In this document: positions 8,898-38,583 of the stretch, in pieces | Position numbering within the stretch: position 1 is the stretch's first letter | Layout of the letters: the number at the start of each line of letters is the position of its first letter | NCBI GenBank assembly: GCA_904063045.1 | Contig: CAJFCJ010000005.1 | Coordinates: 4,374,436 to 4,438,435 of the forward strand | Origin: Dimorphilus gyrociliatus | Taxonomy: Eukaryota; Animalia; Annelida | Direction of reading: 5' to 3' | DNA length: 64,000 bases | Program-made: the position numbers and the translations under genes | The notes under the pieces: model-generated | The model's database searches: none | The model's input: the letters and a program-made list of their open reading frames with translations, nothing else | What the model was told of the DNA's origin: nothing

Positions 8898-11102
8898 AAT
8901 TTTCAATCGGAAGAGAGCTGATAATAGGAGGTGGAGGAGGACGAGGAGGAGAAGGAGGAGAAGAAGAAGGACAAAGAAGATGATGGTATGAAGAGTTATA
9001 GAAGGAAAAGAGGAAAAATTAGCTTGTCCTATTAGAGAGAGAAAGGGAAGAAGACAGAGAAAAATTCCTCCTGAACAACACAAAAAAAGAGAGCGATCAA
9101 TGTGTGATTTGTTAACGGCAACCAATTCGAATTATAAATAAGCAGTTCTTAAAAAGTAAATATTCCAAATTCAAATAATTTAATATTGATTATATAAGCT
9201 TTCATATAAATTTCATTCATTCATTCATTCACTCGTTCATTTATTCATTCAATCATTCACGTAATTAGTCAATCAATCAATCACTTTTCCATAAAGATAA
9301 TGAAGATGATAAGAAATTTAAAGATATCTTTTGTTTTTTTGTTGTTTTTTTTTTTTCTATTTTCTCATCCTATACTTTTAATTTTAGAGGATAAAACACG
9401 AATTTTACGGTGACGACGACTCTGATGGTGTTGGAATGGAAACATTTCGAAAACTTTGTGGTTGGGGAGGAAGGGACTATAGATTATTCCTTTTGCATTA
9501 AATACAAAGAGTTTTGCAGAATGAAAAGATGATAACAGGATAACAAGGATTATTACATATTTAGGACAGCCACCCTCCTCCCCCTCCCTCCATATGAAAA
9601 TGAGGCAACATTGAATAAGGCGATAAAGGCGAATATCGCAATTGTTCTATTTTTAACGCCTACTATTCTTCAGTTGTGTTCAACATGTGCTTTCTCTTAT
9701 TACATGCATACGGAATAACTAATCCACGTGCTAAGAGAGTGATTATTTGATAAACGACCTGTTGAATCATAATGAGATGACAAATGATTTCTTTTTAAAA
9801 ACAATAAATTCAATGACCTATTCAAAAACGAATTTTGTCCATCAGCTAATGGACGACGACGATCTCGAGTGTTGTCCAGACAACGAACAATCGTGTAACC
9901 AGAATCCATTACGCTTCTATAACGCCTCTTCTAGCAGTCAAATCGTATTAATAAAATTTCATATAAAATATATATTATTCAATTTTTCTGTTTTTCTTTT
10001 TCAATCATTTCAAATCATTAATTCATTCTGTTCATATTAGAAAAAATTAGGCCTAAATCCAATTGAATTATCTCTTGAAACGATTTTTTCAGTTTAATCT
10101 TGTCATTTGTCGATATGAAATCAACTGATTGAACTCTTCCTTCTATGAGGAGGATTTGTTTTCTCCTCTCTCTCTCTCTCTTTCTCTCCCTCTTTAATTC
10201 CATATTTATTAAGTTTATTCTTTGGGAAAATTGTAAATAATTGTTCATTTTAGACCTTTTCTCTCCGCCCACCCCCACCCCCACCCCACTCTCTCTCTAT
10301 CTCTTCTCTCTCTTTCTCGTGTCTGGGTTCCCTTAGAATCTATTAATGAAACTTTATTGCCGTCTCCCTTATTAGATCAACAGTTTTTATTTGCTGTTAG
10401 TTTGTCAGCGATCTTAAACATCTTAAAGGAGGTGTGGGTGGGTTTTTACCTTTTCACTACATATATATATAAAGTATAATTCTTCTAGCTTATTCGATTT
10501 TCGAGTTGATTGAAGAAAAAAAAATGAACAAATGGATTTGAAAAGAAGAGAAAAACTTTCATTATTTATTCCATTTTTAAAAGGTCACGTTTAATACAAT
10601 TCACTTTTCTCTAATAGGAAAATGTTTTCACCATTTCACTCTTATTATTCACTTTCCTCCTTCTAAACACGGAATATTTGAGAAAGGCGTTGTCCATGTC
10701 TTCATGGATAAAAACAGATAGTTTATCAATTTTAATCAATACAATTTATTCTAAATATCTTATGACAGCCGGCATACGTTTGTTCTCTTTATAATCAATT
10801 TTCAATCCGTCACCTAGTTTATTTTTTATTTCCTTTACTTTACGTTTCCTGTTGTAATACGTCATCCTTTTACTTTCTAACTATAAAGTGTTTAATACTC
10901 CTTTAAGTCTTTATTACTTTAACTTGGGAAAGAGAAGGGCAAAAGCGCGGCTACTTCTTTTACCCTAGAAAGGAAGGCAGGAAGGAAGGAAGGATGAAAT
11001 AGAAAAGAGAACTATGTAGAAAAGAAAGATGATTGAAAAGTGGATAATAAATAAGAGAGAGATTGATTTTTAAATGAAATTTATTGAAATTGAAAGAGCA
11101 GT

Positions 11103-11356
11103 TTAAGCGTGTTTCAAGATGTTGTAGTAGCAGTTGGAGGAACCATTTTCGTGGCAAGCAGTCTCGTCAACTGGACAACAGTCGTGTTCATCTCCTCTGA
11201 TTGATGGACAGCATTTGAATCCGGCGTTGCAACAACCAGAAACGGTTGGCTCGTGCCAGCAGCAAATCTGACTGCCTGGTTGGCAAAAGTTGTCGGCGGG
11301 ACATCCCCATGCTCTGGTTGTGGTTGGAAGAGTGGTGGCTGCAAAAGGCAAAGAGT

Positions 11357-11396
<40 letters not shown>

Positions 11397-11451
11397 ACTT
11401 ACTGCAATAAGCGACAGCAACGAGAGCGGCGAGAGCAATCAACAATTTCAT
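11103..11451 (-). CDS. Small secreted 12-Cys granulin-like protein, copy A (exons 11451-11403, 11338-11103)
   Basis: Signal peptide MKLLIALAALVAVAYC, phase-1 GT-AG intron, then TTTLPTTTRAWGCPADNFCQPGSQICCWHEPTVSGCCNAGFKCCPSIRGDEHDCCPVDETACHENGSSNCYYNILKHA*. The gene model is solid; the granulin relationship is inferred from Cys order. Confidence 0.85.
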
Positions 11452-11528
11452 TTTTGGTTTGATTTGTAGTTCCTTGTACACTGCTACTAAAGAGTCAGAA
11501 ATGGATAATTAGTTCATTCAACCCGTTC

Positions 11529-11536
11529 CTTTTATA
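11529..11536 (-). promoter_or_regulatory. Candidate TATA box of granulin-like copy A
   Basis: TATAAAAG on the minus strand about 80 nt upstream of the ATG; identical in the duplicate at 36065-36072. Confidence 0.55.
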
Positions 11537-11905
11537 ATACTGAAATTTCAATGGGAAATGGCAGATAATAGATTTCGCTTTATCTTTATGTTGTTTTAAC
11601 TTTGACTGATCAAATTTCCACTATTAATAACATTTACACATTCTCTCCATCCATCTACTTTATTCTTTTTGAACAAAAAATAAAAAAAAAAAGAATTGAA
11701 TTATTTTTTTTTTCTTGAAAAAGAAATTCTTTTTTAATGACATCTGCTTCCTCACATAAAGTATACTTTATGCTTATCTTTGCAATTTTTACCTTTCTTC
11801 TTCATCCTTTCTATTCTTACTTTCTCTTTTTCAACGTACGATAGTTACATTCTGCCTTTGCCTTTTTGATATACTTTTAATCTTTGTCAGATATATAGCT
11901 ATACT

Positions 11906-12170: not shown

Positions 12171-12625
12171 ATGACAATCAAGAAAGTTACTTTTCTTCTA
12201 GCTCTCTTTTCTCTTCTATACATTCTGAAGTTTTCGGGCAAGTTTAACTTTTTCCCCTCCACCCCTCGGCTTATTGGACAAACTTCTTATTAAAGCTTCC
12301 TTTACATATGATATTATATTCTAGTGCATTTATTTCTTTGTTTAAAGTTATCGGTTATTTTTGAAAGTATTATATTACAGAGTCTGCTTCGACCACTCCT
12401 CAATTTTACAATTGTCGACCTAACAACCCTTGCTCGTCGTCCGGTCAAGTTTGCTGCTGGGAAGAAGATGTTGTAGCGGGATGTTGCGAACCAGGATTTA
12501 GATGTTGCCCTTCGCAAACAGGAGACAATCACGACTGCTGTCCGGATTCTCAAGGTGTTTGTCACGAGAGTGGGGGAGCGTATTGTTATTTGGCGAAACT
12601 TGTTAACAAAAGAGGAAATTTTTAA
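12171..12625 (+). CDS. Small secreted granulin-like protein, copy B (exons 12171-12237, 12381-12625; GC-AG intron); absent from the ORF track
   Basis: Exon 2 reads SASTTPQFYNCRPNNPCSSSGQVCCWEEDVVAGCCEPGFRCCPSQTGDNHDCCPDSQGVCHESGGAYCYLAKLVNKRGNF*. Best exon 1 is MTIKKVTFLLALFSLLYILKFS ending G|GCAAGT. Exon 2 is certain; exon 1 is less so because another hydrophobic start exists at 11967. Confidence 0.8.
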
Positions 12626-13900: not shown

Positions 13901-14331
13901 ATGTCTTTAACTATCAAATTTGCTATATTTTTCTCCTTTTGCTTAATTGCAAACGCCTATCCAGGTAAGTTTGTTTTGTTAATTCACTTTCTCTAACCCT
14001 TTCTCTCTCTCTCTCTCTCTCTGTATCTCTGCTATTCTAGTTTAATAGTTACATGGTATCTTTTTTTACAGGAAATCCGTTTCGTAAGGAAAATGACAGC
14101 TGTAGACCAAATAATCAATGCCAAGCAGTTGGACAAGTTTGTTGCTGGGAATTGGATCAATCCATTGGATGCTGTGAAAAAAACTTTAAATGCTGCCCTT
14201 CGCTTAGTGGAGATCGTCACAATTGCTGTCCGGTAAAAGAGTCCGAATGCAACAACAATAATGGAGCGTCTTGCTATCTTTTGAAAACAGTTTTAAAGAA
14301 AACTGGAAAAACTTCAGTAAAAGAGGATTGA
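13901..14331 (+). CDS. Small secreted granulin-like protein, copy C (exons 13901-13964, 14072-14331)
   Basis: Signal peptide MSLTIKFAIFFSFCLIANAYP, donor G|GTAAGT, then GNPFRKENDSCRPNNQCQAVGQVCCWELDQSIGCCEKNFKCCPSLSGDRHNCCPVKESECNNNNGASCYLLKTV...*. Confidence 0.85.
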
Positions 14332-15548: not shown

Positions 15549-15993
15549 ATGTTTTCAAAAGCAATCCTACTGTTCTTTTTACTCTTTTGCTTCTTCTTCT
15601 CTCTTCACCAAGCAAGGATGATTAGCAATTTACAAGAAACCACTCCACAATTTGGTAATTGCAGGTAAGCGTGAACAGCTTGAATGAATGAACGATTCAG
15701 ACAATTAATTGAACGAAATTGATAAATATAAGATAGAACCAATTGTAAATCCATTTTTGGATTAAAATACTCTTTTCCCCTCGGCTATTCCCTATTATAG
15801 ACCAGACAACACTTGCTCGATACAAGGTGAAATTTGCTGTTGGGAAAGCAATACAGTTAGCGGTTGTTGTGAAACCGGATATAAATGTTGCCCCTCCCAA
15901 TCAGGAAGTGCGCACGATTGTTGCCCAGAAAGTGATGAAACTTGTCAAGGATCGCAATGCTATTTGGCCAAAGTTTATAAAAATTACAATTAA
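15549..15993 (+). CDS. Small secreted granulin-like protein, copy D (exons 15549-15664, 15801-15993); absent from the ORF track
   Basis: MFSKAILLFFLLFCFFFSLHQARMISNLQETTPQFGNC(R)|PDNTCSIQGEICCWESNTVSGCCETGYKCCPSQSGSAHDCCPESDETCQGSQCYLAKVYKNYN*; phase-2 GT-AG intron. Confidence 0.85.
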
Positions 15994-18237: not shown

Positions 18238-18770
18238 CAAGATATACTGTATATATATATAATATACATACTTTAAGTCATATTAACTTTGTCTGACTGA
18301 CCACACCCTGATTTAAATTGACTATAATTTTGTTCATTGTAAATTGAATTCGACCTATATATCCGAAACTATTACATCCTTTGATACCCTTCCCAAAAAA
18401 GCCAACAACAACAATTTCCCGTGGTTGTAATCGAAATCTCTCGATTTCCATTATGGATTATATCTTATCTGAAGTGGCTTATTAAAGAGAAAATTTTATC
18501 TCTTAGCTCTCCAATTAAACATGATTATTCAACAAATAACGTGAAATCATTGCACAATGTATGTATTTGAAAACATCTCTGTCTCGTCATATTATTGATG
18601 GACATCCATTTCTCCTAGTATAGGATAAATTTCAGAGTGAGGTCATACAGTATGTAGTTCTTTAATAAACTGCACTCCTCCCAGATAAAAAGAAATTAAC
18701 TTTATCGAATACATAAAATATTCTTATCTTATCGAGATATCTTAGATTACGCTTAATTAGTATTAGCCCT

Positions 18771-18777
18771 TATAAAA
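18771..18777 (+). promoter_or_regulatory. Candidate TATA box of the CBM14-(GS)n gene
   Basis: TATAAAA about 70 nt upstream of ATG 18845; common by chance in AT-rich DNA. Confidence 0.35.
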
Positions 18778-18844
18778 TCAATGGATTTTAAGCGATTTCA
18801 ATTTACTTTATCTTTTGACAGCAGTTGCAGTTGAAAAGTGAAAA

Positions 18845-19696
18845 ATGAAACTAGTTTTTATTTCTGTTCTTTTATCTATTGGTTTGTCTTTAACCTTGCT
18901 TAGCTTTACCTTGAAAATACTTTATCTAAACTTTTTCTTTTCCCTATTGTCTCATCAACAAATAAAGCTACTTGCTATGCCAATGAATGTATTGGTAAAC
19001 CAGACGGAACGCATGTTAATCAGGCTTGCAATTACTACGTCGAATGTCGTAATCAACAAGAATACCCTTTCTATTGTAATCCCCCATTGGTTTATAATCA
19101 TTTAAAACGAAGATGTGACAAGTATGTTGTGTTCAATAGGCTGTTCACTTTTGCTTAAAACATTTCTTTACCTTAGTCCAGAAAGTACTCCTCCTCCATG
19201 TGGACAACAAGAGAATTGCGATTCCCTACCCGATGGAAAATATCCCATTCTACGATTCCAATGCAGATGTTATTTCACCTGTAGATCATCTATAAATATA
19301 GGAACCCAATGCTGTCCGGGTGGTTTGTAAAATACTTTCAATTTTTAAATACAGTGAAATGATGGAATGAAATTTCTTTCAATAGGTTTGGTTTGGGATA
19401 TATTTTCCGGAGTTTGTAATTGGGATTATCAGGTTCCTCCACCGTGCGGAACCAAACCAGTGCCAACGCCTCCAGTCGAAACAACGTCTACTCCAGTCAA
19501 AACAACGTCTGCTCCAGCCGAAACAACGTCTTCTCCTGCGGAAACAACAACTATGGGAAGCTCAGGTTCAGGATCAGGCTCAGGTTCAGGATCAGGCTCA
19601 GGTTCAGGATCAGGCTCAGGTTCAGGATCAGGCTCAGGTTCAGGCTCAACTTCAAATTTTGACACAAATTTCGATGAATTTGTATTGATAAATTAA
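18845..19696 (+). CDS. Secreted chitin-binding protein: signal peptide, 2x peritrophin-A (CBM14), Thr/Pro linker, Ser-Gly repeat tail (exons 18845-18881, 18968-19121, 19177-19322, 19386-19696)
   Basis: Domain 1: CIGKPDGTHVNQACNYYVECRNQQEYPFYCNPPLVYNHLKRRCD. Domain 2: CDSLPDGKYPILRFQCRCYFTCRSSINIGTQCCPGGLVWDIFSGVCNWD, with the typical CBM14 ending CPxGLVW...CxW. All splice sites GT-AG and in frame. Confidence 0.88.
19562..19648 (+). repeat. Coding 18-bp tandem repeat (TCAGGTTCAGGATCAGGC)x4 plus a partial unit, encoding (SG)n
   Basis: Read directly; in frame within exon 4 of the CBM14 gene. Confidence 0.95.
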
Positions 19697-20010
19697 GTTT
19701 TGAAATAGGAAATTAAACTGTATATTGTATATAATAATATTAGAGAGAAGATATTCTTTAGGAAGATGTTTGAAATCTTTCTACTCCTTTATCTCTCTAT
19801 CTATCTATATTTGTCGTTTCTTTCTCGTCTCTTTGCAACCTGCAGAGAGAAGAGAAAGAAAGACAGAGAGAGAGAGAGAGAGAAATAAGCTATGTACCTT
19901 TTTAAATTAATAGATAATTCTAATAATACTTCATTAATTGAATAAAGAAGAATAATAGTAATCTTAAAGAAAAACTTGTTTCTAGATTTAATAGTAAATT
20001 CAGTAAATTT

Positions 20011-20025
20011 CCTGTAGATGGCAGC
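20011..20025 (+). promoter_or_regulatory. CTCF-like motif
   Basis: CCTGTAGATGGCAGC versus core consensus CC(A/G)(C/G)(C/T)AG(A/G)(T/G)GGC(A/G)(C/G)(C/T): one mismatch. Confidence 0.45.
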
Positions 20026-20637
20026 GTTGTTTAAAATAAGTCTATTGTTAACAAAAGTGAAAGTTATTTAACAATAGGAGGATGAATGGTTATTGATGAT
20101 AGAATGTTTCTATTTTAAAGAATTAACGAATTATGTAAAAAACAAGAAGAACAAAATGAATAGATTTATAGATTTTTTAATTAGTTTGTTTCTTTGTTTC
20201 ATTTGTTTTTAGATGAACAAAAATTTATTGATTTTTTTTTTTAAAAAAAAAATCTATTCCTTTTTTTTTTGGTTTTATTTTGTAAACTTTTTCTAAATTG
20301 ATAAGAAAAAAAGAAAAACAGGCTTAAAGCATTTACTCTGTTAGGCTTCAATTTGATCTATCTACAGTATGAGATGGAAGGCTAAATTTCGGAGAGGGTC
20401 AAAAGGAAAATAGTAGGGAGAGAGAGATGGGAGGGAGTGTTAATTTATATCTCTTCCTCTCCCCCCTAAATGTACAAGTATGTGATTAGTCAGATCTCTA
20501 TTGTATAGTTATTATCTCCGTTTATTAGATATTACATAATAGATGACGAAAGCTACCGATAGAATAAGATCGGTAACAGTTCTATAAAATAGCATTCATT
20601 TAAAATTCACTTTACGTATCATCGATTTCAATTTCGA

Positions 20638-20652
20638 CAAGCAGGTGGCGCT
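20638..20652 (+). promoter_or_regulatory. CTCF-like motif
   Basis: CAAGCAGGTGGCGCT versus CCAGCAGGTGGCGCT: one mismatch; same orientation as the site at 20011. Confidence 0.5.
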
Positions 20653-21817
20653 CTATGTTAAAAGTTCTTTAAAAAAGGATTTTTAAGGACTGATATATCT
20701 TATGCACGAAGGAAAATAATGATTTTTATTTACTTGATTAGTTTAGCTTCTCTCTCATTTTAATCTTTGTAAACTCTCCAATCTTTTATAATCTTTAGAA
20801 GATCTCTTCTCTTTCTCTCGTCTCTTCCTCTTTATTCTTCAGTGTCTAATTATCACTTGACTTGACTTTTAGAGATTTTGGCAGAAAGTTTTTTATTAAT
20901 GATGTCCGTAGTGGCCTTGTTTCTTAGCTTTAGTCAATAGGCATGTCTATGAAATGCAAATGGACACGTTACATCCATTCGGACATATTTGTTTTTATAG
21001 TTGATTCTATTCCTCCATCAACGTCTGGAAGAATCATCGATTACTTTGCAAAGAATGCAGCATATAGTTGGCAGAGAGAAAGCTAAAAGAGATGACGATT
21101 CAATCTCTGTACATTTAAAAGACTACCTACACCTAATACCTGACTACATTTAAACTTTAAACCATCATATACAGTAAACTGAATTGTGCAGAAAACAACC
21201 TTACCCTTTATTCTTTATACCCTAGAACTGAGACACATTCCCAAGTCTTTTCAGTTAACCCTTTCCTAACCTAGCCAAATCCTCAATTAAATTCTCCTAA
21301 CAGTATGAATATCTGGAATATCTGAAATCTTACGATGAATTCTCCCATGAGGAGGAGGAGGAGAAGAGGACATTTTCTCTATCATTTAGAGATAATAATT
21401 ATAGGGAAGAATTAACAATTGATACTATACAGTATAGATATATCCGGTATATTGAATATCTATGGTTGCAATACCAGGAAGAAGAGAGAGAGAAAAGGTG
21501 AGAAATATTGCAAGTGTATATTAAAATCCTTTAAGGCAAACATTAAGAAAATGTATATTTTTATATTAAGAGAAATAGAAAAGAAAGCTAGAAATATCAC
21601 TCCAAAATACATTATGATTAGTAGTAGTATAGAGGTAAAACATCAAAGAAAGAAGAGAGGTTTTATCTTTATTATCTTTTAACTCTTCCTCTTATTCTCC
21701 TTCTTAAAATTTTTCTCAAGAAAAATCTCTATATAGTATTAAATAAAAACAAAAACGCTTGTCTGCTTTTTTCCTCTCCTTTGACTTTGCCGTCTACTTG
21801 TTTTGTTTCATTCTCTT

Positions 21818-23325
21818 TCAGTTCTTCGGACCGAAGGCATTCATGAGTTCTAGATAAGAAATATAAAGTTAGGAACAGTTAAACGAATAGGAAATGCTTT
21901 AGTTTCATTCTCTTTCTAAAACTTACCAATCGGTAGAGGGAATATGATGGTGGAATTCTTTTCTGCTGATATTTGCGTTAGAGTTTGAAGATATCGGAGT
22001 TGGAGAGCTCCCGTAGCCTCGTTTATAACATCGGCTGCTTCTTTCAATGCTCTAGAGGCGTTTTGTTCACCTTCCGCCGCGATAACCTTTGCTCTAGCGT
22101 CCCTGGTCGCTTCTGCCTCTGCCGCCATAGCCCTTTGTAGTTGAACAGGTAGTCGTACATCCTTAATTTCAACCCTTTCAACTTTAACACCCCATGGATC
22201 AGTACCTAATGGGAAGAGACAAATTTGAAGAATGTCTTAGATGGATAATTGGTAGAAGAAGAGGAAGAGGAAGAGGAAGAAGAAGAAGCAGACGAATGTG
22301 ATAAAGAAAAACAACCAAAGACTATACAACAAAAAGGTGACTCGCAGTGGTTTACTTTCTAGCAGAAACTTACCCTCATCAAGGACAATCTGAAGATGAA
22401 ATAAAACAATATATAGAGTAAAAATTCAAGATTATATAGTAGAGTATTGGATAGCAGAATAAAAGAGAAGCAGTCTACTTGTACAGTCTACAACTGTTGC
22501 ATATACAATATACTGTATATTGTATTCATTTAAATAAAGGTACATTTTACTGGATTTGTTTTATTTAGTGTCTGATTCTGTCATTCAATATTTACCTGCA
22601 TATTATTCGCTACTGTTTCCCTTTCTGTTAGAATATCGCTTAGCGTTTTTGTTCCTAAAATATTTCTTAATGTTGTTTGGGCTAAAAGGCGAGTTGATCT
22701 GGAACAATCTTCCACATTCACTACGGAAATCATTGGATTCGAAATTTTATAATAAACAACTGCATCAACCGCAATTGTTACCGAATCCTTTGTTAGAATC
22801 TCTTGAGGTGGAACGTCAAAGGAAACCGTACGCAAATCAACTTTGACAAAATGATCCAAACAGGGTATAATAAAGAATATTCCGGGTCCTCTAGACCCGG
22901 AAAGAACTCTTCCAAGTCTAAACATAACCGCTCTTTCGTATTCCTGTACGAGCTTTACGCACATGAATATTGAAATTGGAAAAGTTAAAAAGATAAGAAG
23001 GAGTGAAATTCCTTTCAGGATTATCTAGTAGCGGGAAAAGAATTATTCATTTAAGTTATAGCTGAAGAAGGAATAGAATAATTAGATAATTATACTGTAG
23101 ACTTACACCGCAACATCCAAGACTGCCTCCTCCTCCCTTGATCGTAACATTGTCGTCTGATTAATTTACAGAGTTAGGTTATTGAAAAAAAGAAAAGAGA
23201 AGAGGAAGAAAAGCATTTTTGTTTAAAAGTTGTAACTTTTTCAATTAGAAAAAGAAACGTATAGAAGATTTAAATAAGATTATTTCTGCATAGCTAACTG
23301 ATCATTTACCTTTCGAATTATCCAT
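21818..23325 (-). CDS. STOM: Stomatin/band-7 (SPFH) protein, paralog 1 (exons 23325-23310, 23156-23107, 23024-22596, 22389-22374, 22205-21927, 21849-21818)
   Basis: GCCG, hairpin segment [10 protein letters not shown], then [14 protein letters not shown]...[31 protein letters not shown]...[23 protein letters not shown]...LQLRYLQTL...[12 protein letters not shown]. Complete reading frame with two 16-nt micro-exons. Family-level symbol. Confidence 0.92.
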
Positions 23326-24760
23326 TCCAGCTAGTCAAAGAGTTTTAAATCTTTCATTCACCCTCTCTCTGTTCCTCTCCCGATCAAGAGATGTTTACAA
23401 TTAATTATATAAATTATGGTTCTAGTCTGGTTTATCCTCGCGCTGTAGTTTACCCTATTGAATTTTCCTCTTGGAGCAGGTAACACATTCGACTAGAGGG
23501 GTGTGGTTCCCTGATCAATAATTTATGTAATTATTTTCTTTTTAATTCTGTGCCTTTTTTTCTTTTTTACCTTTTGCATTTATACTCAAAACAGTGATTC
23601 CTTAATGTCTATGCATGCTTGCATGATTTCATTCCAAACAAATTAATTTACTTAATAAGGTCATCTCTCTTTTCCCATTTAATTTATATTATTCATTTAT
23701 ATATACAGTATACTGTATATGAATGTAAAGTACAATCTAGAGAATTAATCTCTTTAGTCCTATATCTACCTTTGGAAAATTCTCTTGCTTTTTGGTTTTT
23801 TATATTTCATATTTTTTCAACATTCAATATAAGGATTCTCTTTACTATTCTCCTTAATAAATGTTACATTTATTAATATCTAGTACAGTGTGAGACATCT
23901 ACTGTGTAATTTGTATATGCCGTATATATACCTTATATACGCTATTCTTTATAGCTGTTAGCTCAATAGAGCCTATTTCTCAGCCTGTCTAATGGATTTC
24001 TTTTGTTTTCTAAAGGCAATGTCGCTATCTTGTTAAAAAAATTAGAATGTAAACGTCAGTTGAAATGAATATTTAGTAACGATACTACTCTACAAACAAT
24101 TAGAATGCTTGTACGGATAATTTATACGCTTTCTTTAACATGTTTTAATAAGATATCTTCACCTGGTCTTTCTTTCCTTCTCCTTTTCGAATGCAGGGTA
24201 ACAGTCTTTAGACTACTCAAATTCGAAATGGAAAATTTTCACCAAGTTCATCTATTTTTTATTTCAATTCGAATTTAAAGCTTCGATATTTCCGGTTATT
24301 AACACAAAAAACAATAACGCATTTCTCCGACCTCTCGACTGACCTAGTTAAAAACATCACAATAAGCATTAATTCAATTTTTTTTTATTATCAAAAATTC
24401 CACAAGTGTTTTACTTATTACGATTAATGGAGATAAAAATTGGAGAGAAATAGGACTACAGTTGAAAGCGATTGTCTCATTAAAATGACAATAACCGTCT
24501 TTTAAGAAGGAAAAATGCGAATTTAGGAAGAGAGAAAGAGAAAGAACGTCTTGGAAAATATGAAAAAGAAAATGGGTAATCATTCGATAATAAGTCACTA
24601 ATTCGTAATATTTTGCTCTTAATCTTATCATAAAGATATTTACTATTATCAATAGCGATAAGAGAAAGAATTCATACTTAAATAAAGAGAGTAAAATCAA
24701 TTAAATCAATTAATCAACACTGCTGTAAAGTTGTTTGGGTATACTTTTGAATATACAAAC

Positions 24761-25680
24761 ATGCGAAAGATAGCTACAATCCTTCTTCCACTTTTCGGTA
24801 TTTTTCATTCATTGCCCTCTTCACCTGTTTCATTAGTCCTATTTTATAGCTTACACTCTGGCCAACGATTGCATTGGTAAACCCGACGGAACTCATGTTC
24901 ACCAAGCTTGTAATTACTATGTAGAATGTCGTAATCAACAAGAAGTTCCCGTCTATTGTAATCCACCATCGGTTTATAATCATGTGAAGAGAAAATGCGA
25001 TAAGTAAGTTATATTCTGTTCATTCTATCCGGCAAATTTGTTCGGATAATAACGAGAAAATCACCGATCAGTCCTCAGAACACACCACCTCCTTGCGGAG
25101 CTGAAGAGAAGTGCGATGGTTTGCCAAACGGAAGGTATCCCCTATTGAATCTTCAATGCCAATGCTATTTTACTTGTCAAGGAGGCACAAACATTGGAAC
25201 CCAATGCTGTCCAAATAGTTAATATTTCATTCAATAATTAATCCAAAATGAATATCGTTTGTAATCCATCTTTTCCTTTGAAATTCATTTATATTAGATT
25301 TGGTTTGGGATGTATTTACCGATGTATGTAATTGGCCAAATCTAACGCCTCCACCTTGCGGAACTAAACCACCAGAGATTCCTCTTCCCACTACAGCAGC
25401 ACCCCTGCCTACTACTAACACACCAAAGCCTGCTACTACTCAGGGTGCAATTCCTCAAACAACTTCACAATTTGGCTGTCCGCCTACCAATTTTTGCCAA
25501 TCAAATCAAATATGCTGCTGGCATAAACCAACTATTTCTGGTTGTTGTAACAGCGGTTTTAAATGTTGTCCATCGATAAGAGGCGATGACCATGATTGCT
25601 GTCCAGTAAATGAAGTCGGTTGTCACGAAAATGGCAGTTCTAATTGTTATTATAATATTTTGAGAACATCTAATAAATAA
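24761..25680 (+). CDS. Chimeric secreted protein: signal peptide, 2x CBM14, Pro/Thr linker, granulin-like 12-Cys domain (exons 24761-24797, 24850-25003, 25072-25217, 25298-25680)
   Basis: MRKIATILLPLFAYTLA-NDCIGKPDG...CCPNNLVWDVFTDVCNWP...PQTTSQFGCPPTNFCQSNQICCWHKPTISGCCNSGFKCCPSIRGDDHDCCPVNEVGCHENGSSNCYYNILRTSNK*. The end of CBM14 domain 2 and the Cys domain lie in one uninterrupted exon. Confidence 0.88.
24850..25376 (+). repeat. Direct repeat, about 527 bp, partner at 26625-27151 (offset 1775)
   Basis: Near-identical exons 2-3, introns 2 and 3 (68 and 80 nt in both copies) and start of exon 4. Confidence 0.92.
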
Positions 25681-26489
25681 ATGAAGATCAAAAGGAATTT
25701 TTATTTTCAAAAAGTACCTGTCTATCTTTTACTCTGTTTTATTGAAGTATACCATTAATGGTGGTATTTGACAAACATGTTTTTACTATTTCCTATGTTT
25801 TAGCATTCATTTTTTCAAGCTAGTAACATCATTGAAATACTTGAAAGATTTAGCTGAAAACAAACAAACAAACAAACAAAGCAACATTTTTTTTTCATTC
25901 ATTCAAAACTCCATCTCAATTTAAAGAATTACTTCACTTCTCACTCCAAAGAGAGTATGAATAATTAATGGAACTAATTGAGTACATACTTCAACGCCAA
26001 AATCATACGCAAGCTCCATTTAATTAATTAAACATAAAGAAGAAGGGTATGATACATAGACAAATGGAAATTTAGTTTAAATAGGTCAACTTTCCACTTT
26101 GAACGATATCATAAATAATATATTTTAAATATGGATAGGACCGAAAAAGATCTTTTCAATAATTAAGATATAGATAATATTCATAGTAGTCACGTGCTTC
26201 AATTCTAAACTGTTTGTATTATTAGCAAACTATACTTTACAATGAATGACGTAAAAGATAAACACAAAGCACTCGTCTTTCATAGATTAAACATATCTAC
26301 ACATTGATTTTTCTTTCAATTTCGCTACCAATCAATCAATTGCAAAAAATCATTTAATATAGTTATCTTCAAGATATTTAGCGTTATCAATAAAGATAAG
26401 AGAAAAAAAAAGTTCTATTTAAGTAGAATAAGTATAGAACAAATCTCTTTGATCTTTTTGGTCATAATCCTGTTGAGAAACATTCAAAG

Positions 26490-27191
26490 ATGATCAAGAT
26501 AATTGCACTTATCTTGCCATTTTTTGGTAGATTACGATTATTATGATTTTCTTTTGTCTCTTTCAAAAATTTTCATTCTTGAAGAGTTATCGTTAAAGTC
26601 GAATATAATTTTCGTATTTCGCAGTTTACGCTTTGGCCAACGATTGCATTGGTAAACCCGACGGAACTCATATTCACCAAGCTTGTAATTACTATGTAGA
26701 ATGTCGTAATCAACAAGAAGTTCCCGTCTTTTGTAATCCACCATCGGTTTATAATCATATGAAGAGAACATGCGATAAGTAAGTTGTATTCTATTCATTC
26801 TATTCGCTAAATTTGTTCGGATAATAACGAGAAAATCACCGATCAGCCCTCAGAACACACCACCTCCTTGCGGAAATGAAGAGAAGTGCGATGATTTACC
26901 AAACGGAAGGTATCCCCTATTGAATCTTCAATGCCAATGCTATTTTACTTGTCAAGGAGGCACAAACATTGGAACCCAATGCTGTCCAAATAGTTAATAT
27001 TTCATTCAATAATTAATCCAAAATGAATATCGTTTGTAATCCATCTTTTCCTTTGAAATTCATTCATATTAGGTTTGGTTTGGGATGTATTTACCGATGT
27101 ATGTAATTGGCCAAATCTAACGCCTCCACCTTGCGGATCTAAACCACCAGAAGCTACTCCTACCCCTTCTCTAAAGGCTAATCCGGAATAG
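26490..27191 (+). CDS. Secreted 2x CBM14 protein with a short tail (exons 26490-26526, 26625-26778, 26847-26992, 27073-27191); absent from the ORF track
   Basis: MIKIIALILPFFVYALA-NDCIGKPDGTHIHQACNYYVEC...CCPNSLVWDVFTDVCNWPNLTPPPCGSKPPEATPTPSLKANPE*; same exon lengths (37/154/146) as its two paralogs. Confidence 0.87.
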
Positions 27192-29597
27192 TCGATAAAT
27201 AACGTACGTAGCAACTTTACAAATTGGATCTGTTCTTCAGCCGCTTTTTGGTTTCTACAATCTAGAACTTTGACTATATCGTCCATCGTTTAGGGTCGAA
27301 AAACGAAATTGTTGGTTTATCGTCTATATATCCAATTGGAAGTTTTTTAAATCGTTATTACAACACCTTAATACAAATATATATATAGTTTATACTGTAT
27401 AAAGTATACTGTAGAACGCAATAAATGCATTAGTTGACCGTTTAAGGAATCCATTAGGCTTTTTGGTTTCAACACTTTTTGCATTAATTATTGAATTCTT
27501 CTCTAATTATATAAAAAATATCTGAAAGAAGCTTGGTTTGTATGCGTCAGACATAAAAAAAGTGTACGTTAGTTTGTATAGTAAACGATTACCAAGAGAG
27601 AATATAGAGACGTAACGATGTTCTAAGAACGATTATCGAAATCTTAATTAAAGTAACCAAGTAGTAATTAGTTATTATTACAATATAATTCGGTAAGGTT
27701 ATGTAATCCTGCTCGATACGCACTACATCTCTTGCTTTATCTTACTGAATCTATTTCTTTCAATTATCTTATCCGAAAAAGGTTGCTCTTTTACTGATAT
27801 CATTCTGAAGACATCGTATGCAATATCATACGATTAATGAATATTTAAATTTATTCATTAGTTCTATTAATTTCTCAGCTAATCTATTAGAAGAGAATAG
27901 TTTGTAGACCTGTTGTTTGGTAGTTTGACAGTGTTTTCCTTTTCTTTGCTCAGTTTGAGTTATATCGATGCACGCTTAACAAGGAAGGTATACTTTTATT
28001 GATATTACTATAGAGACTATCCTTTTATTCTTAATAACTGGAAGAAATGGAAGAGAAGACTACGCAATGAAATATAACCTTCTATATTTCATCAATCAGG
28101 AAATTGCCTATCTAGGATTTTTAGTGGGGAGTAAGTTTTGTTGCTAGTATAATCATCTAATATTTGGTTCCTGTACGGATTGACTTTGAAATACTATCAT
28201 CACTACTTGAGGAGCAATGAAGATGAGTTTGTCCCAAAGATTAATAATATTATTCTAAAGCAAACACTATATTCCCAACTATCTAGATATTGCGCAACAA
28301 ACGTCCTATTACAATGATTTAGCGTCGCTGCCTGCTTTTTATATTGTAGTAAATGGAAAAATATAGTTAATAATTCTCTCTGTTAATGAAGAGAGAATTT
28401 CACGCTATTAATGAAAATTAGGAGGCAAACCCCGATAAAGCATTGACCCTGCGCACCTAGGTGGACCTAACTATAATCTATATATACAGTATATATTGTA
28501 TATAAATCTTTGTTTACTTTACCCTTAAACTAATTAGACCCAACCCTAACTGTTGTAACTGTTGTATCCTTACAACCGCGCGAATGTTTCTCATGAATGC
28601 ATCCTAATTAACACGTAATAATCAGGTAAGAAGAGAGTATAAATGTCATTTTAGGTAATTGTAACGATAGTAATTATTATAGTTAATTAATTAATTATCG
28701 CCAATGCACCAATCCAGATAAAATCTTTATCAATAAAACAATGCAGAGGTAAAAAATTAATGATTTTTTTTTATTTAACATTTTCACTTGACAAAAATTT
28801 TGTAATCTAATGTAAAAAACAAACAGAACAGCTCTTCTTTTTATGGAGAGAGGGAGAGAGAAGAGAGGAGGATGAGGAGGAGGAGGAGGAAAGGAAAGAG
28901 AAATAAACAGGAGAAAATATAGTCATCTTTTCTTTATGAATGAAAGCTAAAAGTGAAACGTAAGGAAAATGTAGTAATGATTGATGGATAGGTTTAAATG
29001 GGGTCAACAATCAACAACAGTAACACATTGCTGCTGAATTGCATACATTTCAATATGTATGTTATAGATGCATGTCTAATAGATATACAGTATATATTAA
29101 TACATAAATTTATACACACTGTATGTACTAATATATATTGACCGGTAAATAGGTGAGATTCCAACTATGCGTTTAATATTTAATTGTAATAATACAACAT
29201 TCATAGTTCGAGTTATTTGCATAACGCTAGTATATATATAAACACCAATATACGAATACATAAATATATGTATATATTTATAAACAACTATTATTTATTC
29301 ATAGTTTTGAAGGTTTCATAAATAAAACTGCTATTGGTCATTGCCAGTTATTTTATTTATTGATTAACAAGTTATTACTGTCTAACTTTCAATATATTCA
29401 ACAGAAATTGATTTATTTGGAAAAGCTGATAATATTCCAGTATGGTGCCAGTCTTATAAATAGATGGAAACCGGTTCCATTAATATGAATAAATCAGATA
29501 TTGAATTAGAACCAGTCTAAAATCTCTATCGTTTTAAGCCAAACATTCGATGGTACCCTAAAAAACATAAACAACTGTTATTTGGGATAAATTCGAA

Positions 29598-31726
29598 ATG
29601 GAAAATTCCGAAGGTAAGATTATTAGTTATTCTAGTATTTATTCGTTGTAGTTGCAGCAGCTGTATACGAACGCATACGTAAATATATAACAAAGTCATC
29701 TCCATCCTATATACAGTATATGTAAATTGTACTGTATATAAGGATAAACAGTATACATATATTCTCTTTACTATACCAAACACGACGGATAAAGAATGAA
29801 ATTATAAGAAGATTTACAATCTGCCGTGTTTGTACATTCTAATTTAAATAGTATAATCCGTATGTAAAGTTTATATTTATCCAGTCTATCTAGGAAACAT
29901 ACCAACTAGTTTGTATATATAGATATACAAGTATATGTAGAGAAGGAATAGACGTAAATTATTTATTGTTTTTAACTACTTACTTCTACCAAACATTTAA
30001 AAGGAAAAGATTAAGAAGAATGAGGAGCAGAACAGAGAGATGCTTGCCCTTTTTTTTTAATTAAAAATGAATAGTTCAAGTAACCTTGGAAACGATTTAA
30101 TAATTTCAATATTCGAATCCTCCTCCTCTCCTTCTTTCTATTGCTAAATTACCACCTATTTGGGGAACGGATACAAAAAACAACTACAATATAATTTACC
30201 TATCTAGATGGAGAGGGAAAGGGAAATCGATACGAAGGGAACTTTATAGACGGTGTAAAAGGAATTATTGATTCTTCATGTAAAATTGATTAATGTAATA
30301 ACGTATGTATTTGTTGACTTGACAATTCATCATTTACTAATAACATTACAACTTAGAGCGTGTATTGCGTAATAAATTTATAGAGATTTACTTATAATTA
30401 TCCAATTTTCTGTGTATTCTATCATCAAGTTCAACCGTATTCATAATATCATTTTTTTTCTTATTTTCTCTCTCTCTCTCTCTCTCTCCCTCTCTCTCGC
30501 TCTCTTTAGCAAGAAAATACGATAGTGAAGGCGATGATTCGGGATGTTGTGGAGTGAGTAGTTTATACATTCATCCATCCATTACATAATTTCTATTGTT
30601 CACAGATAATACTCAAAGTTATTTCATTGGTTTTAATCGTTATCACTTTCCCCATATCAATTTGTATGACTCTGAAAATTGTACAAGAATACGAAAGAGC
30701 TGTTATGTTCAGACTTGGAAGGGTTCTACCCGGAGCCAGAGGACCTGGGATATTTTTTATAATACCTTGCCTCGATAATTTTGTCAAGGTTGATTTACGT
30801 ACAGTCTCCTTTGATGTTCCCCCTCAAGAGATTCTCACCAAGGATTCCGTAACGGTTGCCGTAGACGCAGTTGTTTATTATAGAATATCGAATCCTATGA
30901 TATCGGTGGTAAACGTTGAAGACTGTTCCCGATCGACCCGCCTCTTATCCCAAACAACGCTGAGAAATATTTTAGGGACAAAGACCCTAAGTGATATATT
31001 ATCAGAAAGAGAAACAGTTGCCACCAATATGCAGGTAGGAGAAGGGACAGAGATAATGAAAGAAATCTCTAATTAAAATTGGAATAAATTTACTATTCCC
31101 TCTCTTCCCCTTACAGAGCGTCCTCGATGAAGGCAAGTCTTTATAAGAGGGAAACGGACCTCTCTTTTCTTGTTGTTTATATAGAATACTGTATTTGTTA
31201 AACATTAAACAAACAAACATAACGAATGTTACATTCGTTCTATAAAAATCTATATACAGCGCATAAAGTCAGAATGATTATTTACCCCATTCGCTTTTAT
31301 ATTTAGGAACCGATCCGTGGGGTGTTAAGGTTGAAAGAGTGGAAATAAAAGACGTTCGTCTACCAGTTCAGCTGCAAAGAGCTATGGCGGCGGAAGCCGA
31401 AGCAACTAGAGATGCTAGAGCTAAAGTAATTGCGGCCGAAGGTGAACAAAATGCCTCTAGAGCACTAAAAGAAGCGGCCGACGTAATAAGCGAAGCATCG
31501 GGTGCCCTTCAGCTAAGATACCTACAAACACTCACACAAATATCGGCAGAGAAGAATTCGACAATAATCTTCCCTCTGCCAATTGGTTAGTCATTTATTT
31601 CTATTCAAATATTTATAATCAAAATTCTTCTCTTGTAAGAATTTCCTCTTTTTTGGCGTCAATTTTTCAATCATTTCCTTCTCTATTCCAGAATTGATGA
31701 GTGCTTTTATCGAAAGGAAGAAATAA
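29598..31726 (+). CDS. STOM: Stomatin/band-7 (SPFH) protein, paralog 2 (exons 29598-29613, 30510-30553, 30606-31034, 31117-31132, 31307-31585, 31692-31726)
   Basis: Exon 1 ATGGAAAATTCCGAAG|GT mirrors ATGGATAATTCGAAAG|GT of paralog 1. Exon lengths 16, 429, 16 and 279 are identical between the paralogs. The exon 4 donor is GC (GAAG|GCAAGT). Ends [11 protein letters not shown]. Confidence 0.92.
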
Positions 31727-35800: not shown

Positions 35801-35929
35801 ATTCACATTGGATTCTTAAATACATAGCTCTACTATTGTTATTTCAGTGAAATGGTGTGATAAGACTGGATACATATAATGGGAAAATACAGATGGGAAA
35901 AGCTAATAGACATTTGCTTCATTTCTTTC

Positions 35930-36593
35930 CAAAAAGAATAAAGTAGATGGATGGAGAGAATGTGTAAATGTTATTAATAGTGGAAATTTGATCAGTCAAA
36001 GTTAAAACAACATAAAGATAAAGCGAAATCTATTATCTGCCATTTCCCATTGAAATTTCAGTATTATAAAAGGAACGGGTTGAATGAACTAATTATCCAT
36101 TTCTGACTCTTTAGTAGCAGTGTACAAGGAACTACAAATCAAACCAAAAATGAAATTGTTGATTGCTCTCGCCGCTCTCGTTGCTGTCGCTTATTGCAGT
36201 AAGTAGTCTCTCTCCCTCTCTCTCTCCCTCTCTCTTACAAACTCTTTGCCTTTTGCAGCCACCACTCTTCCAACCACAACCAGAGCATGGGGATGTCCCG
36301 CCGACAACTTTTGCCAACCAGGCAGTCAGATTTGCTGCTGGCACGAGCCAACCGTTTCTGGTTGTTGCAACACCGGATTCAAATGCTGTCCATCAATCAG
36401 AGGAGATGAACACGACTGTTGTCCAGTTGACGAGACTGCTTGCCACGAAAATGGTTCCTCCAACTGCTACTACAACATCTTGAAACACGCTTAAACTGCT
36501 CTTTCAATTTCAATAAATTTCATTTAAAAATCAATCTCTCTCTTATTTATTATCCACTTTTCAATCATCTTTCTTTTCTACATAGTTCTCTTT
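35930..36593. repeat. Inverted repeat, arm 2 (664 bp; partner at 11004-11671)
   Basis: See arm 1. Confidence 0.95.
36150..36494 (+). CDS. Small secreted granulin-like protein, copy A' (exons 36150-36198, 36259-36494)
   Basis: Same protein as copy A except CCNTG instead of CCNAG; intact splice sites. Confidence 0.85.
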
Positions 36594-38583
36594 GCTGTTC
36601 AATCCTTCCTTCTTTTCTTTCGTATTGCCTCTCTTTCTCTAGTTTTCCTCACTTTTGTTTCTTTTCTATCTCTCGTCAATTTTTTTCACCCAAAGCTAGT
36701 CCTCTTTGAAAGAGCATTAGGCATAGAGAAAGCATTATGTAGTATTCTAAATTACACATAGAAATACATATGGCAACAAACTCTGAGTATAAAAATCAAT
36801 CAATCAGAAAATACTGATAATAATTGCTAAGTCAGCTGTTTGTACTCAAGAAAAGTACACGACATTCTTAAAAGAAAATTGGCAAATATTTAGCTTAGGT
36901 TAGCATAAAAATTTGATTTATTTGGAATTTGAATACGAATACGAAACTAATTGAAATGACTTTGTTTATAATTCTGAAAGAATGAATTAATTGGACGGTA
37001 AAATAGAAATTGGAATGTTTAGTTTTTTAAAAGTTCGTTTCTTAATTAAAATTGTATCTTTAATAAATGAAAGAAATTACAATTTTTCATAAAAATTATC
37101 TCTTAATTTCAACATTTCAACACGAAAATGATTAGGTAGCGATTATACTGTAGATACTGTATGGATGTAATAATATATGTATATATATATATATATCCAC
37201 GCTTGATAAGATCTAATACAAAAAAAATACCTTAAATAGTACACAAGGTAAATGTTTCTGTCAAGATAGCTTGTCCTTGACACAACTATTTTTATTTAGT
37301 ACAATGAAATATCAATGGAGACTATTCGACAAGGTTAAATCTAAAATTAAGATTGAAAAGGGACTATAGAATATACCAGACTGCTATTTTGATAAGAAAT
37401 AATATTGTTATCGATTTACTTAGTCAAATAACAAACAAGTATTTCTCTTTGTTTGTTTGTTTTCAAATTTACTAATACGTTTTAATCGAGTTTGTCAAAC
37501 CCTATTATCGTATTATAGCTGAAATATGCAACAAAAGCACTTTCTATATTAATACATATTTCGTCAAGATATTTTGTGTATTTTTGAAAAAATAGTGCTA
37601 GAGAGATAATAGTCGTTATATCATCATGCTACCATGACAATAACTCGGCCTATAAATAACAAAATACTGACAGGAGCGTGAATTTTAAGATGGAATTATC
37701 TACTGAGAAACAGATTATGATTTAGATAGGATTCTTCTTAAATTAATAGAACTTCATTAAATTTCACATTCCTCACATTATATATACTATATATCCGTTA
37801 CATACTGCCGTCGTATGTCTTAGCTACCTGCTCCTCTACCTCTTTAATTCTTTAAATGACTACTCGATTTTTCAATTAATCAGCCGCTATTATGAATACA
37901 GTCTTTCCAAAGTCTTTTAAATATGCTTTACACCACCTTTGGATAAGGATTAATCGTTAAGTAAGCAGCGTCCGTGTAATCTGTCTACTGATATTACTTT
38001 GACAAACTCGGAAAAATTGCTTCGAGCAGAGGATTATTTCGTCTCATTTTCAAACAACTCCAATACCCAATTTCTTCCGACAACCTCTCATTAAATCCTC
38101 CTTAAATCCAAGGCTTTGTAGACGGTTTCGTTCTATCCGTCAAAGAGTAGAAAAGTGTCCATCTTGTTAAAACTAACGAAATCTATTGGATTTATGATAT
38201 TTCTATCGTAAAATTAAGCTTTAGATCATCTAGTATAAGAAATAGAGACGTCTGAACGTCTTTTTTTGATATATAGACAAAAAACAAAACTTGCTTTGAA
38301 ATATGCAAATATAAAGAAGAAAGTAGGCCTATAAAAGTACAATTTCCTCCACACACCACTTCGAATTGATAATAAAAATAAGACTACCACTGAAATCTTA
38401 GTTGCAATAAAAATGAAATTTTAATAAAAATGGAATTTTTATTAAAATATACTTGAATGAATTATCTTTCTTTAATTAGAGAAAAAAGCGTGATTCTCTT
38501 CTTCTTCTTCTTCTTCTTCTTCTTCTGAACAGTGCTCTCTCTCTCATCCTACTTATCCGATGGGAAAAGAGGAAAAATACTCA

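Follow-up and report, generated by a model that had tools for sequence, protein, structure and literature searches.

Proteins with peritrophin-A/CBM14 domains (ChtBD2), such as insect peritrophins, intestinal mucins, and components of the tubeworm tube and of the squid beak, are small and secreted, are built on six-Cys CBM14 domains, and often show Thr/Pro mucin-like stretches and tandem duplication. Matrix proteins in which CBM14 domains are followed by variable C-terminal extensions are well known. Here, we describe three predicted genes of this kind, g1, g2, and g3, found in a 64-kb window (the whole stretch of DNA analysed) of the genome of the annelid Dimorphilus gyrociliatus (assembly GCA_904063045.1, record CAJFCJ010000005.1; window positions are record positions minus 4374435). 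The three genes share a head, composed of a leader and two CBM14 domains, and end in different tails, one of which contains a module of twelve cysteines (the 12-Cys module).

The trio has the general traits of the peritrophin-A/CBM14 proteins listed above, but it differs from them in three respects: an intron splits its second CBM14 domain, which contains 8 Cys; the combination of CBM14 with a C-terminal 12-Cys module is unreported in the literature searched; and D. gyrociliatus lacks chaetae, a tube, or jaws known to be chitinous. Among annelids, tandem expansions of ChtBD2 have been reported for the tube matrix (PMC8476170).

Two described carriers are of particular relevance. In the egg envelope of Caenorhabditis elegans, the chitin-binding peritrophin-A proteoglycans CPG-1 and CPG-2 bind chitin beads, and they combine peritrophin-A domains with Ser-Gly sites and a Thr/Val/Pro mucin-like segment (PMC2063922), as the g1 product is predicted to do. 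However, there is no sequence orthology between them; the Ser-Gly dipeptides of the CPG proteins are scattered and have acidic residues on their flanks, while those of g1, about 15 in number, follow one another without interruption and are bordered by acidic residues only on the C-terminal side. In Ciona, VCBP-C tethers an effector domain to gut chitin via CBM14 (PMC6109156), an arrangement that g2 resembles. In this case the effector is N-terminal and the CBM14 domain C-terminal, the effector is an immunoglobulin V domain, and the two proteins are non-homologous beyond CBM14. The design proposed for the trio in the initial annotation thus resembles that of known chitin-anchored carriers. No fusion of CBM14 and granulin was found in the literature searched, where the matches concerned the unrelated baculovirus granulin. 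What appears to be new at this locus is the fusion of the head to a lineage-restricted module that also occurs free, the conservation of this fusion in a second paralog and a second species, a gene-conversion tract between two of the genes, and a set of errors in the public annotation.

Gene structures and the shared head

Exon lengths of 37, 154, and 146 nt, GT-AG borders, and open reading frames were required in the scan for the genes, which gave exactly one solution for each of g1, g2, and g3; all the introns are canonical GT-AG, and the intron phases (1/2/1) are common to the three genes. The identical lengths of exons 1 to 3 reported in the initial annotation are thus borne out by a unique exon model per gene, as follows:

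18845..19696, + strand: g1, exons 18845-18881, 18968-19121, 19177-19322, and 19386-19696, 215 codons (by arithmetic); product order: leader, two CBM14 domains, Thr/Pro heptad repeats, about 15 Ser-Gly, short acidic/hydrophobic end
24761..25680, + strand: g2, exons 24761-24797, 24850-25003, 25072-25217, and 25298-25680, 239 codons; product order: leader, two CBM14 domains, Thr/Pro linker, complete 12-Cys module
26490..27191, + strand: g3, exons 26490-26526, 26625-26778, 26847-26992, and 27073-27191, 151 codons; product order: leader, two CBM14 domains, then 13 codons and a stop

The stop codon of g2 overlaps an AATAAA motif. In all three translations the frame reads through PPPCG[TS]KP into exon 4 and then diverges, as had been noticed at first reading. 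The paralogy of the heads is far above chance (head against head, tblastn E from 1e-20 to 1e-30), and no additional CBM14 heads beyond g1-g3 were found in the window by tblastn. The description of the family as three genes holds for the window; outside it, a fourth head gene (DgyrCDS1911) lies on another scaffold. Jointly with the explanation developed below, we consider it probable that the locus consists of three separate predicted genes for small secreted peritrophin-like proteins.

Sequence searches, family scans, and structure predictions were run on single exons or on natural database proteins, and not on the joined products of g1-g3. A hydrophobic, signal-peptide-like leader is visible in the exon 1 translation of all three genes. 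Exon 2 of g1, g2, and g3 matches Pfam CBM_14 (PF01607) above the gathering score, with E from 2e-8 to 2e-7 and 31-34.5 bits against a cut-off of 22.1, over profile positions 1-45 of 53; DgyrCDS1911 scores 26.7 bits against the same profile. As read from the exon translations, domain 1 has six Cys with spacing 13/5/9/12/9 and the aromatics NYY and VYN, and its nearest solved relative is the squid chitin-binding beak protein 3.

The second domain is less regular. Exon 3 alone gives partial matches to CBM_14 in g2 and g3 (E 0.008-0.013, profile positions 1-33), because domain 2 is split by intron 3; on exon 3 of g1, taken alone, Pfam gave no CBM_14 match. Indeed, exon 4 encodes the last two Cys of domain 2, of which the second is that of PPPCG; therefore, the head ends inside exon 4. 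Domain 2 contains 8 Cys, corresponding to the six of CBM14 and one extra pair, and an hhalign comparison of the two domains places Cys 1-4 in register, in a weak alignment (E 0.0028, probability 11%). The predicted head is a leader followed by two CBM14 domains, the second of which is a divergent 8-Cys copy. The initial annotation had assigned a signal peptide and two CBM14 domains to exons 1-3: the leader and the two domains are retained, while domain 2 straddles intron 3 and is not confined to exon 3.

The 12-Cys module, tethered and free

A census by tblastn and hidden Markov model (HMM) identified six full 12-Cys copies in the window, namely the g2 tail and five free-standing genes with a leader exon or a candidate for one, together with a weak fragment:

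25474..25662, + strand: 12-Cys module of g2, pattern C, C, CC, CC, CC, CC, C, C
11103..11451, - strand: DgyrCDS4124, leader and 12-Cys, 94 amino acids, within a 97-98% inverted duplicate of the DgyrCDS4131 locus
12365..12625, + strand: unannotated 12-Cys copy, domain exon with a candidate leader exon upstream
13901..14331, + strand: DgyrCDS4125, leader and 12-Cys, 107 amino acids
15549..15993, + strand: unannotated 12-Cys gene, candidate leader exon 15549-15664 bearing the first Cys, domain exon from 15801
36150..36494, + strand: DgyrCDS4131, leader and 12-Cys, 94 amino acids, exon 1 36150-36198 (phase 1), exon 2 36259-36494
9735..10037, + strand: weak 12-Cys fragment, last third of the profile only (E 0.0076), probably a relic

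At the protein level, the g2 module is 73% identical to the free-standing DgyrCDS4124 and DgyrCDS4131; in DNA it is 75% identical to DgyrCDS4131, which is 11 kb away, and this similarity is restricted to the domain and excludes the flanks. Across the 10 members of alignment A3, 11/12 Cys positions are invariant. The first Cys is absent from two rows, and for the copy at 15.8 kb this is because that Cys sits in the upstream exon of the gene.

The domain profile, compared with 1.84 billion representative proteins, gave five matches, all of which are members of the 12-Cys family: two D. gyrociliatus genes, two free copies, P0003 from the sequencing runs of a relative and P0004 from a marine metatranscriptome, and a protein that starts with the end of a CBM14 domain (CNW...PPPCGTKPP) and continues with a Ser/Thr/Pro linker and the 12-Cys domain (P0005). 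A contig look-up for P0004 and P0008 found none. A word-index protein search with g2 exon 4 returned DgyrCDS4131 only; it missed P0005, so its blanks mean little. From the predicted genes and the profile matches, the module is restricted to the lineage and occurs both free and tethered within 30 kb.

Some of these genes lie in larger duplicated segments. The inverted duplication that contains DgyrCDS4124 and DgyrCDS4131 (10979-11688 and 35913-36618) is 97-98% identical over about 710 nt, with 24 kb between the copies. A pair of Band_7 (stomatin-like) genes flanks g2 and g3 (21921-23026 and 30604-31591), about 80% identical and in inverted orientation. The two inverted pairs are nested without a common centre and so do not form a simple palindrome.

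Canonical granulins have twelve Cys with four central CC pairs and a D-x-x-HCCP core. The module of the g2 type, called a granulin-like domain in the initial annotation, resembles them in its C, C, CC, CC, CC, CC, C, C series and in a D-x-H-x-CCP stretch, and it also occurs free, as peptides of about 6-8 kDa that would be secreted. On the other hand, the spacing between the third and the fourth CC pair is 9 residues in the module and not 5. Pfam Granulin (PF00396) gave no match, at E up to 10, on 12 sequences including the g2 tail, the five free copies, P0003, P0004, P0005, and P0026. No granulin was found among PDB chains with phmmer and profiles A1 and A3, nor among the matches of profile A1 in the 1.84 billion representatives.

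The AlphaFold2 models, with a predicted local distance difference test (pLDDT) of 81.6 for the g2 module (mean) and 87.5 for DgyrCDS1911, have 4-5 short strands and beta-hairpins. When the g2 model was compared with the PDB by Foldseek, the best template modeling (TM) score was that of zebrafish granulin AaE, 6cku (0.43/0.54, 28% identity), a match that is not significant (E 3.1); the same comparison found no granulin match for the DgyrCDS1911 model. Granulin membership was rejected, since Pfam, the PDB profiles, the large protein search, and the fold comparison gave no significant result. The module appears to carry a granulin-like Cys framework of unproven homology, and by sequence it forms an orphan family; of the earlier label, the Cys pattern alone fits.

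Origin of the tails and alternative explanations

The tethered form recurs outside the window. P0005 is located on contigs of 7-18 kb (L002 and L003) of a close relative, which bear the whole gene, with the leader fused to the first CBM14 domain (200 nt), an exon of 146 nt, and a last exon containing the end of the head, the linker, and the module. A ceramide kinase encoded on the same contig shares 87% identity with that of D. gyrociliatus; therefore, the contig comes from a close but distinct relative. The syntenic spot in D. gyrociliatus (CAJFCJ010000002.1), recognized by the ceramide kinase and a DUF8415 gene, contains DgyrCDS1911, of 236 residues as annotated. DgyrCDS1911 and the ortholog of the relative have the same three-exon structure and the same architecture, and both finish with a complete module and a stop. 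Since these two genes share the architecture of g2, the predicted order of head, linker, and 12-Cys module is conserved in two paralogs and two species. The search of other loci for the same head, suggested with the initial annotation, thus led to DgyrCDS1911 and its sister-species ortholog, with a tail of the g2 kind.

In both species, the DUF8415 gene separates the ceramide kinase from the CBM14 gene (L002 4397-8144; L007 13646-17347). It has one product of 1081 residues in D. gyrociliatus and two open reading frames, of 337 and 771 residues, in the relative.

Head identity is 90-96% between g2 and g3, 65-80% between g1 and g2/g3, and 54-67% between the window genes and the DgyrCDS1911 pair; accordingly, g2 and g3 group together, then g1, and then DgyrCDS1911 with its ortholog. 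An additional leader intron is common to the window trio, relative to the DgyrCDS1911 pair. In the tail tree, the g2 tail forms a clade with DgyrCDS4124 and DgyrCDS4131 (support 94/91), sister to DgyrCDS1911 and its ortholog (91/87), in a joint clade (82/88) outside of which the remaining free copies are placed.

The near-identity of the g2 and g3 heads is concentrated in a single block of 540 nt:

24837..25376, + strand: conversion tract, g2 copy, in gapless pairing with the g3 copy
26612..27151, + strand: conversion tract, g3 copy, in gapless pairing with the g2 copy

The block is 95.6% identical (95.5-97.5% in exons and 92.6-98.8% in introns), and its limits, beyond which identity is random, are 13 nt before exon 2 and directly after the PPE codons of exon 4. 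Outside the block, g2 and g3 can be aligned only in a 46-nt promoter segment (83%) and in the weakly similar exon 1 of equal length. With introns as similar as the exons and random flanks, next to a weakly conserved promoter segment and an exon 1 of equal length, the block indicates a recent gene-conversion tract between older duplicates, and not selection on a platform. The constancy of the head between g2 and g3 would be largely due to this recent tract, and does not speak for a platform kept by selection.

The tails themselves are of three kinds, as first described: Thr/Pro repeats with (SG)n in g1, a linker with a Cys-rich domain in g2, and a stub of 13 amino acids in g3. The exon 4 translations and the repeats bear this out. 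The g1 tail has two repetitive segments:

19470..19548, + strand: g1 mucin-like linker, 21-nt unit repeated 3.8 times with 87% matches, P-x-x-T-T-S-x heptads
19560..19648, + strand: g1 Ser-Gly run, 18-nt unit repeated 4.9 times, 98% identical, about 15 consecutive Ser-Gly

The Ser-Gly run seems recently expanded and looks like a young microsatellite. Acidic residues are found only downstream of it (D, D, and E within the last 12 residues). Serglycin (PF04360) was rejected for g1, as it reached 18.5 bits against a cut-off of 30 and the match, limited to the Ser-Gly run, is one of low complexity. The 13 codons of the g3 tail contain no domain, and past the stops of g1 and g3 an HMM scan of six frames detected no remnant of the 12-Cys module.

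The explanation that we favor, and hold as probable overall, is that of a peritrophin-like trio derived from an ancestral gene whose tail was kept, replaced, or lost. The ancestral form most likely had a leader, two CBM14 domains, a Thr/Pro spacer, and the 12-Cys module, and would be kept in g2, in DgyrCDS1911, and in the sister-species ortholog of the latter. After one old fusion, the g1 tail would have been replaced by the Ser-Gly repeat and g3 truncated 13 codons into the spacer. DgyrCDS4124/4131 may represent a free copy released from a g2-like tail; the module would thus shift between tethered and free forms, because these are the free genes closest to the g2 tail. A recent conversion of about 540 nt, ending exactly at the tail start, would have made the heads of g2 and g3 nearly identical.

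As to function, the head would bind the chitin fibrils of an extracellular matrix, possibly the gut peritrophic matrix or the egg envelope, and the Thr/Pro spacer, probably O-glycosylated, would hold the tail away from this matrix. The cargo displayed would be a disulfide-rich peptide in g2, a polyanionic or glycosylated Ser-Gly brush in g1, and nothing in g3; the product of this gene could simply cross-link or cap chitin, or the gene could be in the course of being lost. The sequence analysis shows the gene structures, the CBM14 identity, the paralogy, the conversion tract, the recurring architecture, and the restriction of the module to the lineage; that the products are secreted, bind chitin, and are glycosylated, the tissue concerned, and the direction in which the tails changed are inferred.

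Several points weigh against this explanation. The public annotation conflicts with it: the record has no + strand gene at g1, and a minus-strand Band_7 gene (19429-22964, 294 residues) takes the antisense of the g1 Ser-Gly exon as its last exon; g2 and g3 are merged in a single + strand gene of 358 residues ending at 27191. Between the g2 and g3 heads, 8 codon changes are non-synonymous and 3 synonymous; these counts give no indication that purifying selection has acted after the conversion, and g3 may be in decay. The support of the tail tree is moderate and the alignment short. With the neighboring free genes the g2 tail shares 73% identity, and with the DgyrCDS1911 tail a much lower 44%, which would equally fit an independent local capture. 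Lastly, the literature searched contained no chitin data for Dimorphilus or Dinophilus and no documented chitinous structure for D. gyrociliatus.

That the public annotation is correct, with g2 and g3 as one gene of 358 residues and four CBM14 domains and the g1 region as the 3' end of a Band_7 gene, is in our opinion very improbable. The two gene calls are on record, the pipeline drew on transcript alignments (PMC7854359), and the length of 358 residues agrees, by arithmetic, with splicing from a GT at 25619 in g2 to exon 2 of g3. Such a junction, however, would sever the 12-Cys module after 8/12 Cys, unlike in the homologs, as DgyrCDS1911 and the sister-species gene keep the complete module and a stop. 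Moreover, g3 starts with an ATG and a leader exon of equal length (37 nt) of its own and shares a promoter block with g2, and the g2 stop falls on AATAAA. The distant antisense exon of the Band_7 gene is unsupported, because the paralogous Band_7 gene (29.6-31.7 kb) has no similarity beyond 21925. The same annotation demonstrably mis-splices DgyrCDS1911 (L007 18286-19364), where an early donor removes 14 residues of the second CBM14 domain. For these reasons the three-gene model is better supported, as far as the predicted structures go. The public annotation also lacks the 12-Cys genes at about 12.4 kb and at 15.5-16.0 kb.

Two further explanations accept the three genes and concern the history of their tails. 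The first is true module swapping, in which the head is a platform that repeatedly captures cargo and g2 and DgyrCDS1911 gained their 12-Cys tails separately, g2 by recombination with a neighboring free-standing gene of the DgyrCDS4124/4131 type. The closeness of the g2 tail to DgyrCDS4131 in protein and DNA is in line with it, as are the five free copies that surround the head genes and the frame compatibility of the parts (the leader exon is followed by a phase 1 intron in the head genes as in DgyrCDS4131, and the lengths of exons 2 and 3 add up to 300 nt). Nevertheless, the junction between head and tail is inside an exon and not at an intron, the DNA similarity with DgyrCDS4131 stops at the domain with unlike flanks, and the chimera tails with DgyrCDS4124/4131 form one clade mirroring the head tree, for which a single ancient fusion needs no more events. 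We consider this swapping unlikely, and the term "exchangeable" used at first for the tails is overstated: the head and tail trees are compatible with one ancestral gene keeping, replacing, or losing its tail. The second, to which we give slightly less credit still, is that of a neutral by-product, where only the type of g2 and DgyrCDS1911 is functional, the g1 Ser-Gly tail is a slipped microsatellite, and g3 is truncated and possibly non-functional, with its intact appearance maintained through gene conversion by g2. The equal similarity of introns and exons in the g2/g3 block, the 8 non-synonymous against 3 synonymous changes, the g3 tail devoid of domains, and the 98% identity of the 18-nt repeat in g1 agree with it; the 12-Cys architecture is the only one conserved elsewhere, although no search was made for orthologs of the g1 or g3 type. 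Against it, the frame of g3 is open, every head Cys and the canonical splice sites are retained, and the gene has a leader exon of its own and a promoter block like that of g2; g1 is an old paralog that is still intact. A single ancestral architecture with later changes of the tail is the explanation that we retain.

Regulation, candidate matrices, and significance

The regions upstream of the genes share a short block and sites of the GATA type:

24625..24670, + strand: g2 promoter block, 83% identical to g3 26363-26408 and partly similar to g1 at about 18720-18745; TTATC..AGATAT
18683-18808, 24625-24670, 26363-26408, 36016-36038, and 11563-11585 (- strand): promoter GATA-type sites, also present at about 18204 in L007 and about 9103 in L002

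In the block, GATA-type motifs form pairs at about 100-135 nt before the ATG, and the element TTATC..AGATAT is common to g1, g2, and g3. All 9 head and 12-Cys genes examined have at least one WGATAR motif 82-165 nt upstream of the ATG, with a background of 0.33 per 100 nt. These motifs, considered post hoc, may be a lead to a common, perhaps gut-specific, regulation.

Two other features of the window were observed. A near-palindrome, TATAC(T/A)GTATA, occurs at 70 sites in the whole window (one mismatch allowed), against 2.5 expected from shuffles; examples are at 19714-19731, 23702-23719, and 27391-27415, and on contig L002 of the relative at about 9525-9545. The sites inspected are non-coding and near gene ends, as 18 nt past the g1 stop and about 200 nt past the g3 stop. 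Further downstream, diverged repeats with 72-75% identity, about 7.7 kb apart (50718-50845/58376-58503 and 51504-51621/59317-59434; also 43218-43320), suggest another tandemly duplicated gene pair.

The initial annotation listed chaetae among the possible target matrices of the trio. D. gyrociliatus has no chaetae, parapodia, or appendages (PMC7854359), and chaetae are thus ruled out. A chitinous peritrophic matrix has been reported in annelids (PMC6109156), and by analogy with the systems described above the gut peritrophic matrix or the egg envelope would be the remaining candidates.

The most immediate consequence is a correction of the annotation of a reference annelid genome, which leaves out g1 and two small peptide genes, fuses g2 with g3, and mis-splices DgyrCDS1911. 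The locus also offers a clean, small example of the evolution of secreted modular proteins: the conversion stops exactly at the boundary between head and tail, one fusion is conserved in two paralogs and two species, and the same module is found free and tethered within 30 kb. With a framework of the granulin type that no profile method links to granulins, the orphan 12-Cys domain is a good target for structure determination.

A bolder and rather doubtful possibility is that the 12-Cys proteins are a new, dinophilid-restricted family of granulin-like peptides, free and chitin-tethered, all under gut promoters of the GATA type. If so, they would be an annelid counterpart of the chitin-anchored immunity of the gut barrier, comparable to that of the Ciona VCBP, in which gene conversion holds the anchor constant while the effectors diversify. 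More generally, if these proteins sit on a chitin matrix of the gut or of the egg, they would provide a handle on the use of chitin in an annelid that lost its chaetae.

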